Origin: Phaeosaccion multiseriatum
Taxonomy: Eukaryota > Protista > Ochrophyta, other classes
Assembly: GCA_965112735.1 (NCBI GenBank)
Contig: OZ218959.1
Span: 1,674,001 to 1,738,000 of the forward strand
Direction: 5' to 3'
DNA: 64,000 nt
Part shown: positions 20,583 to 27,800 of the stretch, piece by piece
Layout: each line of letters opens with the position of its first letter
How positions within the stretch are numbered: position 1 is the stretch's first letter
Position numbers and translations under genes: made by a program
The notes under the pieces: generated by a model
What the model was told of the DNA's origin: nothing
The model's input: the letters and a program-made list of their open reading frames with translations, nothing else
Databases searched by the model: none

Positions 20583-21149
20583 GGATGAGAGAGAGAGCCT
20601 CTCCCAGCAGGCAGGCAGCCAGGAAGGGAGAGAGAGGAGGGAGGGAGAATCACATTTCCACTGGAGTCCAGCACACAATTATGAGAGGCCACCCAGAGAA
20701 AATTACATTCCACACACACGCCCCAGACCAGCCATGGGAGAGACGGGAGAGAAAACATTTCTTGAGGGCTGGGGTCCACACAAACCAGCAAAAAAGGCCA
20801 GAGCGAGAGGGGAGATTTTGGGAGATACGGGCGGCTAAGCAAGCGCTGCAAACGCCAGCACAGCAGAATTTTAGAGGAGAGTTGCCACCATAACGGCCAG
20901 CCGCTGCTAACGTGCCCCCGTACCCAAAGACAGCCTCACCGAGTGTAACAAGATAAAAGCAGGATTGGGGGGAAAAAAGGGTTTGGGGATGAAGAAGAAG
21001 GGATAGTGATGGTGGAGGACAGGACAAATCGCGAATAGCCGTGATCGTGATCGTATTAGGGTATTTTTGTAAAAAAATAACCGTGCCAAAAACAATTTCA
21101 ATCCGCTGCGTCCTGACACCTCATATTTTTTTCCTCCTTTTTCCAGGAG

Positions 21150-21341
21150 TCGACCCTGGACAAGATTACGGTGTGCGCCGGCCGTACTCAGTAATCAGCC
21201 CCCGGCTGGCGCATAATCAGTACTCAGGCCGGCTGGTCACCAGCTGTAAGCAACAAAGGCCGGCTGGCGCCGGTCATAATCAGTAACCAGGCCGACTGCG
21301 CCCGTAGCTAATCAGTATCAGATAATCTTGTCCAGGGTCGA
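21150..21341. mobile_element. MITE copy 1 (TIR TCGACCCTGGACAAGATTA) with internal ~30-bp repeats
   Basis: Perfect 23-bp inverted repeat 21146-21168/21323-21345. Internal TAATCAGTA-x-CAGGCCGGCTGG units are the reverse complement of those at 27360-27610. Confidence 0.75.
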
Positions 21342-21845
21342 CTCCCTCCCTCCCTCCCTCCCTCCCTCCCTCCCTCCCTCCCTCCCTCCCTCCCTCCCTC
21401 CCTCCCTCCCTCCCTCCCTCCCTCCCTCCCTCCCTCCCTCCCTCCCTCCCTCCCTCCCTCCCTCCCTCCCTCCCTCCCTCCCTCCCTCCCTCCCTCCCTC
21501 CCTCCCTCCCTCCCTCCCTCCCTCCCTCCCTCCCTCCCTCCCTCCCTCCCTCCCTCCCTCCCTCCCTCCCTCCCTCCCTCCCTCCCTCCCTCCCTCCCTC
21601 CCTCCCTCCCTCCCTCCCTCCCTCCCTCCCTCCCTCCCTCCCTCCCTCCCTCCCTCCCTCCCTCCCTCCCTCCCTCCCTCCCTCCCTCCCTCCCTCCCTC
21701 CCTCCCTCCCTCCCTCCCTCCCTCCCTCCGTCCCTCCCTCTCTCCCTCCCTCCCTCCCTCCCTCCCTCCCTCCCTCCCTCCCTCCCTCCCTCTCTCCCTC
21801 CCTCCCTCCCTCCCTCCCTCGCTCCCTCCCTCTCTCCCTCCCTCC
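21342..21845 (+). repeat. (CCCT)n microsatellite, ~500 bp
   Basis: Directly visible; slightly degenerate at the right end. Confidence 0.98.
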
Positions 21846-22337
21846 TGTAAAGAGTCACGTTGCTCTCCACCTAGGATAGGAGTAGCCGCATGGACAAGGT
21901 AATAGCAACCCCAAAGCCAGCCTGGCAGCCAGCCTTGTCTCTATTAGCTTTATCCGTGAGCCATCCTAAACGACCAACCTGCTGGGAGGTGAGTGAGAAA
22001 CGGGCCACGCACCGTTTCTCACCGTATTTGCCTGGGCCTGGGCCATTGACATAATACTGACTTTCAACATCCCCGTCAGCCATCCCTGGGGCACCGTTTC
22101 TCACCGTATTTGCCTGGGCCTGGGCCATTGACATAATACTGACTTTCAACATCCCCGTCAGCCATCCCTGCACTTCTAACATCCCCCTGAACTAAACTAT
22201 TGCGTGTCCCCACGCAACTCAAAGCGGGTTCGCCTACTAAAGCTCGACTTGTAGCAAAAGCCTCCATGTTGCTTCCAATAAAAACGGATGAGAAATATGC
22301 AAAACTCACCCAGGTGTGTGCGACCGCTCCTCCAACA
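21846..22337 (-). repeat. Inverted, diverged full LTR copy with an internal 80-bp tandem duplication (22009-22088/22091-22170)
   Basis: Reverse complement aligns along 24447-24842 (TGTTGGAG...TCTTTACA vs TGTGGAG...TTCCACA), roughly 80% identical by eye. Confidence 0.85.
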
Positions 22338-22340
22338 CAC

Positions 22341-22481
22341 ATCCTCCTGTAGGTGGTCGTTTAGGACAGTGCATAGATAAGCTAATAGATACAAGGCCGG
22401 CTGTCAGGCTAGCTTTGGGGTGCTGCTACCTTATCTGTGTGTCTAGTCCGTTTCGTGGAGGTCTAAGCACGACTTTCCACA
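22341..22481 (+). repeat. Truncated 5' LTR (end of U3, R, U5)
   Basis: 100% identical to 24702-24842; ends in TCCACA. Confidence 0.9.
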
Positions 22482-22492
22482 ACCCCAAAGCT
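22482..22492 (+). promoter_or_regulatory. Self-priming primer-binding site (Tf1/sushi type)
   Basis: ACCCCAAAGCT abuts the LTR end and is the exact reverse complement of AGCTTTGGGGT at 22411-22421 within the LTR. It does not start with TGG, so it is not a standard tRNA PBS. Confidence 0.75.
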
Positions 22493-22739
22493 CGAAGACA
22501 GTTTGGCACTTGACCAATAGGCTCAGCAGAGGGAGGCTTTGAGTTCATCGTGCGCTAGACTAGCACGTGGACGTTTTTGGTTAGTGTCCAAGGCACGGAC
22601 ACGCCACAGCTTGCTCCGTCAGGGGCGTTTAGCTTAATTAGCTTTGCTTGGCTTGGCTTTGCTTGGGAACCGGTGGGAGAATTTATTTGTGGGAGAATTT
22701 ATTGGTTGGCTTTGAAAGAGTGGCACAGCAGCGCTACCG

Positions 22740-23130
22740 TGGATCGGCAGCAAGAGGTAGCTAGGGATATTGCAAGGAGCAGCTGCAGGGGCAGCAGCAG
22801 GAGGCACGGAAGGATTGGCGAGCAGCTGCAGGGGCAGCAGCAAAGGATTGGATACAGCAGCTGCAGGGGCAGCAGCAGGAGGCACGGGTATCCGCTATAC
22901 TTAATCAGAGGGGACCGCTGATTTAGAGGTTAGCGGCAGGAGATACAGCAGGCTTGGCTGGAGAGGCAGGGGGCGCAGCAGCAGGTGTTGGATACCGCAG
23001 CAGCTGCAGAGGCAGCAGCAGCAGCAGCAGGCACGGATATCAGGCATAATTAGGCACGCTCGGAGGGAGCAGCTGCAGGGGCGCAGCAAGAGGGAAGATG
23101 CCGGCATAGCGCGGCGATCGGCTGGCACAG
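22740..23130 (+). repeat. Degenerate repeats in the element leader (GCAGCTGCAGGGGCAGCAGCAGGAGGCACGG)
   Basis: About 6 partial or complete copies visible upstream of the ORF. Confidence 0.7.
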
Positions 23131-23163
23131 AGTAAGCGTACTGGCTGGTCCCAGGAGGAACCG

Positions 23164-24363
23164 ATGGGGGATCACGACATGGTCAATCGGTTGATGGAGG
23201 AGCTGCATGGAATCAGGATGGACCTTGCAGCACTTCCGGTGCTACTGGGCCAGCTATTGGGTCGGGATCCAAGGCAGCAGTCGGAGGTGCAGGTAGCTGC
23301 TGCACAGGTGGGGTCGGGCAGCAAGCAGAAACGATCTAAGGTCGACTGTGGGGCAGGGCAAGTCTTTTCGTGCTTTCACTGCAAGAAGGAGCACTGTCTC
23401 TCTCGCTGCCCTACCGAACCGACCACCGGAGCCATGGTGAGGAAGATGGTGGATGCAGGGAAGCGGTACGGCTTGGGTACAGCTTCCCAGGTGGTGGTGA
23501 CGCTTGTGCAGCGCACTGAGCAATACAAGCGCGTCCTTGCTCAGCTGGTGAAGGCCGTGACGACGACAGGGCAGGCAGCACAGCGCAGAGCCTCGAAGGA
23601 GTTGCAGACGCTAGAGCTGACGGTGGCGGCCGCGGCGCAGTCTCGGCTTCGGGTGGCGCAAGCGCAGGCTCAGGAGGAGCAGGTAGAGCAGGCTGGCGTC
23701 ACGCTTGCAGAGGGGTCAGTGTCTGCTGCGGTCCTCGAGCGGGAGCGGCAGGAGCGCGAGTCTGTTTGGCTGGAGGAGGAACAGTTGGAGCGGGCGCGTG
23801 TGTGTGCGGCTCAGGAGCGGGTGGAGAGGCGCCGCGTCGGGGAGAAAGAGAGACGGCAGCAGGCGCAACCAGCTGCCTTGGCTGAGGAAGCTCAGCGCAA
23901 GCTGCAAGAGGTACACACGCAGGCTCAAGCGGAGAGCACGCGGGTACAGCAAGTGCGGGACTGGCAAGAGCGGGAGGACGCACTGCGGGCTGTGGCTCAG
24001 CCTGTAGTGCGGGTGAATGGTGTTCTCAGTGGTCTTGGTTCCACTACCGAAGTTGGTGCGCGGCCAAAGAGGAGGGGGCGGCGGTCGAAGAAGCGCAAGG
24101 TAAGGCCCGACGGGGTCAGGGATCCGGCAAGGCAGCGCCGGTGGCAGCAGGAGATTGCAGCGGATCGTCCGGCCTGGTTGGACCGGCCTCCTCTCTCTCT
24201 GAAGGATCGGATGCAGCAAGTGGAAGCGGCGCAGGCGCGGCTGCAGAAGCTGATGGACGAGAAGGCGGCCCAGCTGCTGGCGACGGAGCAGGCCGCGCAT
24301 GGAGTGCCTCGTACGGTTGCAACGCTGGGACAGCAGGTGACGGTGGGGACGAGCCAGCGCTAG
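23164..24363 (+). CDS. Element-encoded 399-aa Gag-like protein: CCHC zinc knuckle, coiled coil, basic NLS-like patch
   Basis: Intronless ORF with CFHCKKEHCLSRC (C-x2-C-x3-H-x4-C), a long Q/E/R/A helical region and RPKRRGRRSKKRK. Confidence 0.7.
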   Translation: MGDHDMVNRLMEELHGIRMDLAALPVLLGQLLGRDPRQQSEVQVAAAQVGSGSKQKRSKVDCGAGQVFSCFHCKKEHCLSRCPTEPTTGAMVRKMVDAGKRYGLGTASQVVVTLVQRTEQYKRVLAQLVKAVTTTGQAAQRRASKELQTLELTVAAAAQSRLRVAQAQAQEEQVEQAGVTLAEGSVSAAVLERERQERESVWLEEEQLERARVCAAQERVERRRVGEKERRQQAQPAALAEEAQRKLQEVHTQAQAESTRVQQVRDWQEREDALRAVAQPVVRVNGVLSGLGSTTEVGARPKRRGRRSKKRKVRPDGVRDPARQRRWQQEIAADRPAWLDRPPLSLKDRMQQVEAAQARLQKLMDEKAAQLLATEQAAHGVPRTVATLGQQVTVGTSQR

Positions 24364-24446
24364 CGCAGCCGTGCGCAGCCACGGAGGGTGAGTTTGAGGC
24401 CTTGGGCTTTCTCACCCTGCCGTGGCAGGTGTGTGGCAGGGTGACC

Positions 24447-24842
24447 TGTGGAGTGCCACGTCACACACTGGTGGGTGAGTTTTGCATATTTCTCATCCGG
24501 TTTTTTTGGAAGCAGCATAAAGGGGTTTGCTACAGTCGAGCTTCAGTAGGTGAAAACGCTTGAGTTGCGTGGGGACACGCAACAGTCTTGTCAGGGGAGT
24601 GTTAGAAGTGCAGGGATGGCTGACGGGGATGTGGAAAGTCAGTCGTATGTCAGTGGCCCAGGCCTAGGCAACGCAGTGAGAAACGGTGCCCGTTTCTCAC
24701 TATCCTCCTGTAGGTGGTCGTTTAGGACAGTGCATAGATAAGCTAATAGATACAAGGCCGGCTGTCAGGCTAGCTTTGGGGTGCTGCTACCTTATCTGTG
24801 TGTCTAGTCCGTTTCGTGGAGGTCTAAGCACGACTTTCCACA
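24447..24842 (+). repeat. Full 3' LTR (396 bp, TGTGGA...TCCACA)
   Basis: 6-bp terminal inverted repeat. Internal hairpins TTGCGTG-GGGA-CACGCAA and AGTGAGAAACGG-TGC-CCGTTTCTCACT (24675-24701). Confidence 0.75.
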
Positions 24843-26862
24843 CTCCCTCCCTCCCTCCCTCCCTCCCTCCCTCCCTCCCTCCCTCCCTCCCTCCCTCCCT
24901 CCCTCCCTCCCTCCCTCCCTCCCTCCCTCCCTCCCTCCCTCCCTCCCTCCCTCCCTCCCTCCCTCCCTCCCTCCCTCCCTCCCTCCCTCCCTCCCTCCCT
25001 CCCTCCCTCCCTCCCTCCCTCCCTCCCTCCCTCCCTCCCTCCCTCCCTCCCTCCCTCCCTCCCTCCCTCCCTCCCTCCCTCCCTCCCTCCCTCCCTCCCT
25101 CCCTCCCTCCCTCCCTCCCTCCCTCCCTCCCTCCCTCCCTCCCTCCCTCCCTCCCTCCCTCCCTCCCTCCCTCCCTCCCTCCCTCCCTCCCTCCCTCCCT
25201 CCCTCCCTCCCTCCCTCCCTCCCTCCCTCCCTCCCTCCCTCCCTCCCTCCCTCCCTCCCTCCCTCCCTCCCTCCCTCCCTCCCTCCCTCCCTCCCTCCCT
25301 CCCTCCCTCCCTCCCTCCCTCCCTCCCTCCCTCCCTCCCTCCCTCCCTCCCTCCCTCCCTCCCTCCCTCCCTCCCTCCCTCCCTCCCTCCCTCCCTCCCT
25401 CCCTCCCTCCCTCCCTCCCTCCCTCCCTCCCTCCCTCCCTCCCTCCCTCCCTCCCTCCCTCCCTCCCTCCCTCCCTCCCTCCCTCCCTCCCTCCCTCCCT
25501 CCCTCCCTCCCTCCCTCCCTCCCTCCCTCCCTCCCTCCCTCCCTCCCTCCCTCCCTCCCTCCCTCCCTCCCTCCCTCCCTCCCTCCCTCCCTCCCTCCCT
25601 CCCTCCCTCCCTCCCTCCCTCCCTCCCTCCCTCCCTCCCTCCCTCCCTCCCTCCCTCCCTCCCTCCCTCCCTCCCTCCCTCCCTCCCTCCCTCCCTCCCT
25701 CCCTCCCTCCCTCCCTCCCTCCCTCCCTCCCTCCCTCCCTCCCTCCCTCCCTCCCTCCCTCCCTCCCTCCCTCCCTCCCTCCCTCCCTCCCTCCCTCCCT
25801 CCCTCCCTCCCTCCCTCCCTCCCTCCCTCCCTCCCTCCCTCCCTCCCTCCCTCCCTCCCTCCCTCCCTCCCTCCCTCCCTCCCTCCCTCCCTCCCTCCCT
25901 CCCTCCCTCCCTCCCTCCCTCCCTCCCTCCCTCCCTCCCTCCCTCCCTCCCTCCCTCCCTCCCTCCCTCCCTCCCTCCCTCCCTCCCTCCCTCCCTCCCT
26001 CCCTCCCTCCCTCCCTCCCTCCCTCCCTCCCTCCCTCCCTCCCTCCCTCCCTCCCTCCCTCCCTCCCTCCCTCCCTCCCTCCCTCCCTCCCTCCCTCCCT
26101 CCCTCCCTCCCTCCCTCCCTCCCTCCCTCCCTCCCTCCCTCCCTCCCTCCCTCCCTCCCTCCCTCCCTCCCTCCCTCCCTCCCTCCCTCCCTCCCTCCCT
26201 CCCTCCCTCCCTCCCTCCCTCCCTCCCTCCCTCCCTCCCTCCCTCCCTCCCTCCCTCCCTCCCTCCCTCCCTCCCTCCCTCCCTCCCTCCCTCCCTCCCT
26301 CCCTCCCTCCCTCCCTCCCTCCCTCCCTCCCTCCCTCCCTCCCTCCCTCCCTCCCTCCCTCCCTCCCTCCCTCCCTCCCTCCCTCCCTCCCTCCCTCCCT
26401 CCCTCCCTCCCTCCCTCCCTCCCTCCCTCCCTCCCTCCCTCCCTCCCTCCCTCCCTCCCTCCCTCCCTCCCTCCCTCCCTCCCTCCCTCCCTCCCTCCCT
26501 CCCTCCCTCCCTCCCTCCCTCCCTCCCTCCCTCCCTCCCTCCCTCCCTCCCTCCCTCCCTCCCTCCCTCCCTCCCTCCCTCCCTCCCTCCCTCCCTCCCT
26601 CCCTCCCTCCCTCCCTCCCTCCCTCCCTCCCTCCCTCCCTCCCTCCCTCCCTCCCTCCCTCCCTCCCTCCCTCCCTCCCTCCCTCCCTCCCTCCCTCCCT
26701 CCCTCCCTCCCTCCCTCCCTCCCTCCCTCCCTCCCTCCCTCCCTCCCTCCCTCCCTCCCTCCCTCCCTCCCTCCCTCCCTCCCTCCCTCCCTCCCTCCCT
26801 CCCTCCCTCCCTCCCTCCCTCCCTCCCTCCCTCCCTCCCTCCCTCCCTCCCTCCCTCCCTCC
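24843..26862 (+). repeat. Perfect (CCCT)n tract, ~2.0 kb
   Basis: No interruptions seen. Confidence 0.98.
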
Positions 26863-27077: not shown

Positions 27078-27800
27078 ACGGGGCTCTCTCTTCATCTTGG
27101 CGGAGCAGCTGGCTGTGCAGGCAGTGGAGCAGCAGCAAGCAGTCCATCGTCGCATGCTCCTCCAGCGAGTCGGAGTACGTGGCGGCAAGCAGCGCTACCA
27201 AGGAGATACTCAGCATGAGGTATACGCTGCGAGACTTCGACTGCGAGCGAGCAGCGCTTTGCCACCTGCCTTGCTTCCTTCTTCAGGACAACAAGGCGGC
27301 CATCAACCTGGCGGAGAACGAGCTCGCACCGAGGAGGACCAATCGGCCCTGGAAGAGGTTATCAGATTACTGATTACGGCCGGCGCAGCCGGCCTGATTA
27401 CTGATTACTGCCAGCCGGCCTGATTACTGATTATGGCGCCAGCCGGGCCTGATTACTGATTATGGCCGGCGCCAGCCGGGTCTGATTACTGATTATGACC
27501 GGCGCCAGCCGGCCTGGTTACTGATTATGACGGGCGCTAGCCGGCCTGATTACTGATTATTGGCGCCAGCCGGCCTGATTGTTACTGATTATGACCGGCG
27601 CACACTGTAACGCACCTCTTCCAGGCTCAGGGCCGAGACCAAGCAAGCACATCGATGTGCGGTACCATCACATCCGCCAGCAGATCAAGTTCGGCACCGT
27701 CGCCATGGAGTATGTGGAGACAGCTCACCAGCCAGCCAGGCGGCAGACATCCTAACGAAGAACCTGAACACTACTGGCTGCATTCGAGCGCCACCGTAAG
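27078..27800 (+). pseudogene. Ty1/Copia RNase H remnant, frameshifted and interrupted by a MITE
   Basis: WSSSKQSIVACSSSESEYVAAS..KE, QDNKAAINLAEN..RRT|KHIDVRYHHIRQ, ADILTKNL: canonical Copia RNase H motifs. Confidence 0.9.
27343..27636. mobile_element. MITE copy 2 with 6-bp target-site duplication GACCAA
   Basis: TIR TCGGCCCTGGAAGAGG / CCTCTTCCAGG(CTCAGG)GCCGA; GACCAA at 27337-27342 and 27637-27642; about 8 internal CTGATTACTGATTATG(R)CCGGCGCCAGCCGGC units. Confidence 0.85.

Follow-up and report, generated by a model that had tools for sequence, protein, structure and literature searches.

A non-autonomous LTR retrotransposon of the alga Phaeosaccion multiseriatum with a primer-binding site complementary to its own LTR, a candidate for Tf1-type self-priming

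How does a retrotransposon start minus-strand DNA synthesis when it carries no reverse transcriptase of its own and when the bases that directly follow its 5′ LTR match the LTR itself? This question is raised by an element, here named EL, found at positions 22341–24842 of the window (the whole stretch of 64,000 nucleotides analysed here, to which all positions refer unless a locus is named). Self-priming has been demonstrated for Tf1 and has been inferred for Tj1, Maggy, Skippy, sushi and others, as well as for the plant Tcn1 chromoviruses and the TAR copia elements (PMC4600332; PMC6934838; PMC6317226). Below we describe the EL family, its composite insertion in the window, and the comparison of EL with three other families of the same genome, SIS, FAM3 and BIG.

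The EL copy in the window is a young, non-autonomous LTR retrotransposon: it has direct LTRs with TG...CA ends, a primer-binding site (PBS) and a polypurine tract, its family shows target duplications, and it lacks PR, RT, RH and IN. The initial annotation had described LTRs of 141 bp, and self-comparison bears out that the repeats at 22341–22481 and 24702–24842 are identical. The length, however, was wrong. A genome search with 21847–24842 as the query returned at least 12 full-length copies of 2.58–2.64 kb each, and because nine other copies carry a 5′ LTR equal to window positions 24630–24842, the true LTR is 213 bp long. Comparison of the repeats and of the genome copies shows that the 3′ LTR (24630–24842, forward strand) is complete, and that the 5′ LTR of the window copy (22341–22481, forward strand) is truncated, retaining LTR positions 73–213 and missing positions 1–72. 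The LTR begins with TGTGGAAAGTC and ends with GACTTTCCACA (i.e., TGTGG...CCACA), with terminal inverted repeats of 11 bp; the 3′ copy includes a U3 hairpin (24676–24700) and, at 24772–24782, the site S discussed below. The approximately 12 copies match only 22341–24842 of the query, with an identity of 94–97% in which indels make up most of the differences; nucleotide diversity is about 1%, and substitutions range from 0.2 to 2% according to region. Five copies are flanked by 4-bp target duplications (ACAA, CAAT, CATG, CACT and CCAG), and EL insertion is therefore integrase-mediated; the CTCC duplication at the window copy is ambiguous, as it sits within a microsatellite. The number of copies, their low diversity and the target duplications agree with the earlier proposal of a recently active non-autonomous family.

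The corrected boundary also changes the reading of plus-strand priming. A G-rich, polypurine-like tract, GGGATGGCTGACGGGGA, ending in GACGGGGA (24613–24629, forward strand), directly adjoins the true 3′ LTR; the reported absence of such a tract had relied on the wrong LTR boundary, and the suggestion of an atypical plus-strand primer is not supported. The same GGGATGGCTGACGGGGA is present in SIS, and FAM3 and BIG have GGCATTGGGGA at this site. Two hairpins that had been placed at the LTR boundary are both real (24371–24470, forward strand, in the 3′ UTR), but they lie 160–260 nt upstream of the LTR; a diverged form of them occurs in SIS.

A diverged LTR to the left of EL had been taken as part of the same element. 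It is instead the 3′ end of a separate family, SIS, fused head-to-head to EL. The inverted SIS 3′ LTR (21847–22069, reverse strand), which is 100% identical to many SIS copies (L024–L030), abuts with its U5 end, ...CTCTTTACA, a (CTCC)n microsatellite that forms the left flank of the composite insertion (21342–21845), and is followed by the SIS polypurine tract and 3′ internal region (22070–22340, reverse strand), with an 82-bp tandem duplication (22009–22170) overlapping the LTR start. In all, window positions 21847–22351 are 100% identical to many SIS copies. SIS copies match up to 22351 and EL copies match from 22341, so that the fusion point is an 11-nt microhomology, ATCCTCCTGTA (22341–22351), at which the SIS antisense sequence equals EL LTR positions 73–83. 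On the right, EL is flanked by a further (CTCC)n microsatellite (24843–26862); both arrays were found by repeat search. Low-share metatranscriptome contigs from a single RNA run, which may derive from DNA, cover parts of SIS and EL and reveal no transcription start; they break at 24630, the start of the EL 3′ LTR, and at 22351 they run on into SIS sequence or have loose ends.

The composite arrangement could be read as a single DIRS-like or foldback element of about 3 kb (21847–24842) with terminal inverted repeats of about 400 bp: inverted repeats that are 81–91% identical link 21905–22324 with 24460–24782, and the unit has TGT...ACA ends and lies within one microsatellite. However, its left arm belongs to a 1.7-kb family with direct LTRs and target duplications of its own, no tyrosine recombinase is present, and the 12 EL copies stop short of the left arm. 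We regard this reading as highly improbable, and reject it because the inverted cap is found at no other locus. The preferred reading, a fusion of two elements, may reflect an event during reverse transcription. The truncation at EL LTR position 73 recurs in EL copies L011 and L012, SIS truncations fall within about 20 nt of the same point (in L048, and in L043 at 9767), and the truncation point coincides with the base, on the 3′ side, of a strong hairpin in U3, GTGAGAAACGG-TGC-CCGTTTCTCAC (24676–24700). We infer that the window copy is a chimeric cDNA: completion of the minus strand in the 5′ LTR would have stalled at the base of the U3 hairpin, the nascent strand would have switched through the 11-nt microhomology onto an SIS minus-strand cDNA and run to its end, and the chimeric product, with two U5-type ...CA ends, would have been inserted by integrase as one unit into the (CTCC)n array.

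The coding capacity of EL is limited to an orphan ORF of 399 aa (23164–24363, forward strand) with a coiled-coil-like character and a CX2CX3HX4C knuckle-like motif. No Pfam domain was found in it above the cut-off, nor a match for any other long EL ORF, in agreement with the first description of a sole ORF with a zinc knuckle and without PR, RT, RH or IN. Searches of 5.8 billion proteins returned no homologue, and the Atlas no informative neighbour; in the genome, relatives of the ORF occur only inside EL copies, and none is present in BIG. The ORF is open in nine of 12 copies, and a crude dN/dS estimate is not below 1, so that nothing points to purifying selection in a family as young as this. 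The protein is a putative Gag, the knuckle-like motif being the one ground for this assignment.

Directly after the LTR end, ...TTCCACA (22481), lies the putative PBS, ACCCCAAAGCT (22482–22492, forward strand), which is identical in all 12 EL copies. As first noticed in the initial annotation, these 11 nt are the exact reverse complement of 22411–22421 within the LTR (forward strand); this site, AGCTTTGGGGT, is the proposed self-primer and start of R and will be referred to as S, and its 9-nt core (22413–22421) is common to SIS and FAM3. Two further elements pointed out at the same time were also recovered: a TATA-like box, TAATAGATA (22383–22391, forward strand), lies 28–30 nt upstream of S, and a U5 stem-loop (22455–22480, forward strand; stem 22455–22463 with 22471–22480) just before the PBS is part of a predicted fold in which S pairs with the PBS. 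Of trials with a random 9-mer, only 0.07% gave a reverse-complement match within an LTR of 200 bp, and an anchored 11-mer would do so more rarely still. No conserved tRNA-type TGG site follows the LTR in EL, SIS or FAM3.

The pairing of the EL PBS with its own LTR is strengthened by the other families. SIS is a non-coding LTR element of 1.7 kb with LTRs of 224 bp, internal tandem repeats (L024, 216–1924) and its own target duplications, and FAM3 is an element of 1.6 kb (L043, 459–2087) with the target duplication GGTG. The LTRs of EL, SIS and FAM3 are 71–75% identical to one another, and all three families have the junction LTR...ACA|ACCCCAAAG; in the genome, ACAACCCCAAAG occurs 81 times, versus seven times for the reversed control. 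Site S, CTTTGGGGT(T), lies 60 (EL), 61 (SIS) or 80 nt (FAM3) before the LTR end, with a TAATAGA box about 30 nt upstream; the TATA-like box reads TAATAGAG in SIS and FAM3 and aligns with TATAAGG in BIG. The S:PBS duplex comprises 11 nt in EL and 10 nt in SIS and FAM3, where the outer two EL pairs are not kept. The minimum-energy folds of the R-U5-PBS region pair S with the PBS in EL, SIS and FAM3, and a U5 hairpin equivalent to that of EL is predicted in the latter two. Taken alone, however, the pairing in these three families, which are related by descent, is conservation and not covariation.

Covariation of the PBS with the start of R, which the initial annotation had put forward as a test, was found when BIG was included. 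BIG is a Ty3/gypsy element of about 13 kb, with LTRs of 200 bp paired some 13 kb apart around RT matches. Its segment in L043 (2025–8969) encodes RT, RNase H, a 3′–5′ exonuclease domain like DNA_pol_A_exo1, and integrase; among solved structures the RT is closest to that of Ty3, the database offers relatives of about 31% identity at best, and no chromodomain was detected in BIG at E ≤ 0.001. The BIG ORF stops just before GGCATTGGGGA|TGTTGGAAGGCC..., the polypurine tract and LTR start of FAM3; besides this tract, BIG and FAM3 have roughly the first 45 nt of the LTR in common. The PBS sequence of the other families, ACCCCAAAG, is absent after all BIG 5′ LTRs; nine BIG 5′ LTR junctions read instead ...TTTTACA|ACCCGTTTTGACACA, a reading that covers the first 15 nt after the LTR. 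The corresponding site, PBS′, (A)ACCCGTTT, is the reverse complement of BIG LTR positions 132–140, S′, AAACGGGTT, and the two could form a duplex of 9 nt with a different sequence. As in EL, 60 nt separate S′ from the LTR end, and TATAA precedes it by 29 nt. Each of the four families has a TATA-like box 28–31 nt before S or S′, which lends indirect support to this site as the putative 5′ end of the transcript, and S and S′ occupy the same columns of a MAFFT alignment of the four LTRs. Between the EL-type families and BIG, TTTG in S is replaced by AAAC and CAAA in the PBS by GTTT, i.e., there are four compensatory pairs. BIG has a different S/PBS pair at the homologous position, although in its minimum-energy fold the PBS pairs with a nearer partial site and not with S′.

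These comparisons bear on what the PBS may bind. Were its partner a cellular RNA, for instance a half-tRNA or a fragment left by cleavage within the anticodon loop of a tRNA, its complementarity to the LTR would be incidental or itself tRNA-derived. The context of S, AGC-TTTGGGG-TGCT, is loosely similar to the anticodon arm of tRNA-Pro(UGG), a likeness that speaks for such a primer. Priming by half-tRNAs is known in copia lineages (PMC6317226). Priming of this kind would call for two nuclear tRNAs or similarly abundant RNAs, one bearing CUUUGGGGU and one AAACGGGU, at the 3′ end or where the RNA is cleaved. In partial pattern tests, however, CTTTGGGGT followed by a T-arm motif occurred at chance level (three matches against four for the control), and the sole match to TTTGGG followed by a T-arm was an organelle tRNA with a different loop. 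ARAGORN found no tRNA within the window, and a search of the whole genome with RF00005 scored organelle contigs only; the tRNA comparison covers these. Moreover, the different PBS of BIG matches the LTR of BIG at the same spacing, which would not be expected of a shared cellular primer. Such a primer leaves unexplained that the match is in each case to the LTR of the element itself, in BIG as in the EL-type families, and we consider priming by a cellular RNA distinctly unlikely.

Alternatively, the S:PBS pairing could be real but serve cyclisation of the RNA, packaging or strand transfer, with something else acting as the primer. The covariation shows selection for the pairing but is silent on the function behind it, and the genome also harbours AUT1-type chromoviruses with a palindrome at the PBS position, an instance of unusual primer-site biology. 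Nevertheless, the duplex opens with the base that immediately follows the LTR (or with the last LTR base), which is where the 3′ end of a primer must sit, and the sequence beyond the LTR holds no second conserved candidate. A role other than priming is less likely because the duplex starts exactly at the LTR/PBS boundary, and we consider it unlikely overall.

A different kind of evidence comes from 13 junctions found genome-wide. At these, the LTR end followed by ACCCCAAAG leads into an LTR in reverse complement, which runs outward from S as far as the start of U3; the control gave none. Three were inspected (L049, L046 and L045): L046 and L049 have the same flank and are not independent, and L045 carries a different LTR type. 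The snap-back unit of L049 has TGT...ACA ends and is flanked by a TCAT duplication. Junctions of this structure would be expected from the extension of a DNA 3′ end that carries the PBS sequence and is annealed to S. To judge from their structure, they show that a polymerase uses the S:PBS duplex, and they are silent on the identity of the minus-strand primer. Plus-strand strong-stop DNA folding back on itself is a possible source of the snap-back junctions.

Taking the above into account, we consider it probable (about 0.7) that EL is reverse transcribed by Tf1-type self-priming; RT, RNase H and IN would be supplied by BIG or another Ty3/gypsy element of its clade. According to this model, which is built on sequence comparison, transcription would begin about 30 nt after the TATA-like box, at or near S (22411–22421); the 5′ end of the RNA would fold back over the 60-nt R-U5 region, with its hairpin, and pair with the PBS that adjoins the LTR; RNase H acting in trans would then cut after S, and the resulting 3′-OH would prime minus-strand DNA, as in Tf1. 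The plus strand would start at the G-rich purine tract before 24630. The autonomous partner, which had been described as unseen, now has a candidate clade, as BIG has the same polypurine tract and LTR ends as FAM3. The ends of EL (TGTGGAAAG...TCCACA) resemble, but do not equal, those of BIG (TGTTGGAAG...TTTACA), and it is from this similarity of LTR ends only that BIG or its kin may be proposed to mobilise EL. The TGTTGGAAG clade of LTR families also includes RT arrays of about 60 copies on contigs 1 and 8. The chromovirus AUT1 (L044) was also considered as a helper and rejected: it has no PBS–LTR complementarity but a palindromic site instead, and its FAM3-like segment is a copy-specific chimera. 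More tentatively, an entire clade of Ty3/gypsy-type elements in this alga might self-prime, together with the non-autonomous derivatives of these elements, with a private primer/PBS pair in each family, and the complementarity present in plus-strand strong-stop DNA might yield integration-competent by-products, namely LTR palindromes formed by snap-back and, like the composite unit in the window, chimeric cDNAs with a U5 end on either side. If so, the genome would hold in these by-products a natural record of side reactions of reverse transcription.

The mechanism itself has known precedents in fungi, vertebrates and plants; what is new is the host lineage and the non-autonomous carriers. In a full-text literature search, no paper connected self-priming with stramenopile algae. 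Our observations would add a further eukaryotic lineage, as well as non-autonomous elements, to the range of tRNA-independent self-priming, and they supply covariation, at the sequence level, for a primer/PBS duplex; the snap-back and chimeric junctions, if confirmed, show a consequence of having a PBS complementary to the element's own LTR. In practical terms, annotation pipelines that require a tRNA-type PBS would miss such families or place their boundaries wrongly, as exemplified by the 141-bp versus 213-bp LTR.

The closest known systems are Tf1 and Tf2 of Schizosaccharomyces pombe and the Tf1/sushi group (Tj1, Maggy, Skippy, Cft-1 and sushi-ichi), in which, as in EL, the PBS adjoins the 5′ LTR and about 11 nt of it are complementary to a stretch of the LTR that follows a TATA-like box (PMC4600332; PMC6934838). 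The likeness extends to a U5 hairpin between S and the PBS, to the lack of a tRNA-type site, and to the Ty3/gypsy type of the candidate partner of EL. Unlike the Tf1/sushi elements, however, EL is non-autonomous and has an orphan ORF, and its transcription start and RNase H cut are proposed; BIG, for its part, has a 3′–5′ exonuclease-like domain and no detected chromodomain, and the host is an alga with plastid contigs. Plastid-like contigs carrying tRNAs are present in the genome. For the plant Tcn1 chromoviruses and the TAR Ty1/copia elements, self-priming was likewise inferred from sequence, i.e., from PBS–LTR complementarity (PMC6317226); EL differs from these in its host lineage, and the case for it adds covariation between families and the snap-back junctions. 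With LARD and TRIM elements, EL has in common that LTRs, PBS and polypurine tract are kept and pol is absent, with mobilisation in trans, and SIS and FAM3, with their 1.6–1.7 kb and internal tandem repeats, are TRIM/LARD-like. Classical TRIMs, however, have a PBS complementary to a tRNA (PMC6934838), whereas EL, SIS and FAM3 have their own primer/PBS pair, unlike that of their putative helper.

In the EL family of non-autonomous LTR elements and in the related, non-coding SIS family, truncation of the 5′ LTR recurs at or within a strong U3 hairpin, which in the window copy of EL has an 11-bp stem (window 24676-24700). Truncated EL/SIS copies are found at window 22341, in the genome stretches L011, L012 and L048, and at L043:9767. 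The junction in L012 reads LTR-ACCCCAAAG-LTR(73...), the second LTR resuming at position 73, and in L011 EL is joined to an LTR resembling that of the chromovirus AUT1 plus 28 nt. At 13 sites in the genome, an LTR is followed by an inverted U3, forming a palindromic unit (for example L049:437-829, L046, on the minus strand, and L045) whose join falls exactly at the PBS/S, that is, the primer-binding site and its complementary site within the LTR; one of these units is flanked by a TCAT target duplication. The palindromic units may represent snap-back products that formed during reverse transcription and then became integrated.

The 2.5-kb (CTCC)n array hosting the window insertion has flanks that are themselves repeat-rich (window 21146-21345 and 27365-27601); they contain a perfect 23-nt inverted repeat, its arms at window 21146-21168 and 21323-21345, as well as tandem repeats with a 32-nt unit (GATTACTGATTATGCCGGCGCCAGCCGGCCT). 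Tandem repeats of about 113 bp make up most of the SIS interior (L024:500-1260), and internal tandem repeats also occur in FAM3, another related LTR family (L043:813-1275).

EL, SIS, FAM3 and RT-bearing elements are concentrated in a few TE islands (G000:C14:2.30-2.76 Mb; C8:0.87/1.18/1.60 Mb; C12:1.58 Mb; C10:1.69/1.92 Mb), many of the elements being nested, head-to-head or in tandem (LTR-internal-LTR-internal, e.g., L002). The AUT1 copy (RT-RH-IN-chromo; L044:159-5954 = G000:C9:2026158-2031953) contains a FAM3 fragment without its 3′ LTR (L044:585-2021); the LTRs of the chromovirus itself are 249 bp long, and its target duplication is GGCA. Its PBS position is occupied by a 12-nt palindrome, the first base of which is the last base of the LTR (A|GAACTAGTTCT), and no complementarity was found between this palindrome and the element's own LTR.

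About 60 weak RVT_1 matches (34 bits), spaced 4-7 kb apart, were detected on contigs 1 and 8 (e.g., C1:617264-775014 and C8:1440787-1766609). The polypurine-tract/LTR start found 4-5 kb downstream of them, GGGGATGTTGGAAG, is the same as in BIG, the ~13-kb Ty3/gypsy-type element, and the LTRs there show 78-80% identity to those of BIG; this set is an abundant second RT-bearing family of the same clade. The BIG coding region (L043:2025-8969 = G000:C3:4763524-4770468) specifies a protein with an N-terminal part of low-complexity sequence and, between RNase H and integrase, a DNA_pol_A_exo1 (3′-5′ exonuclease) domain (aa 1216-1401, E 4e-15), which is out of the ordinary for a Pol protein.
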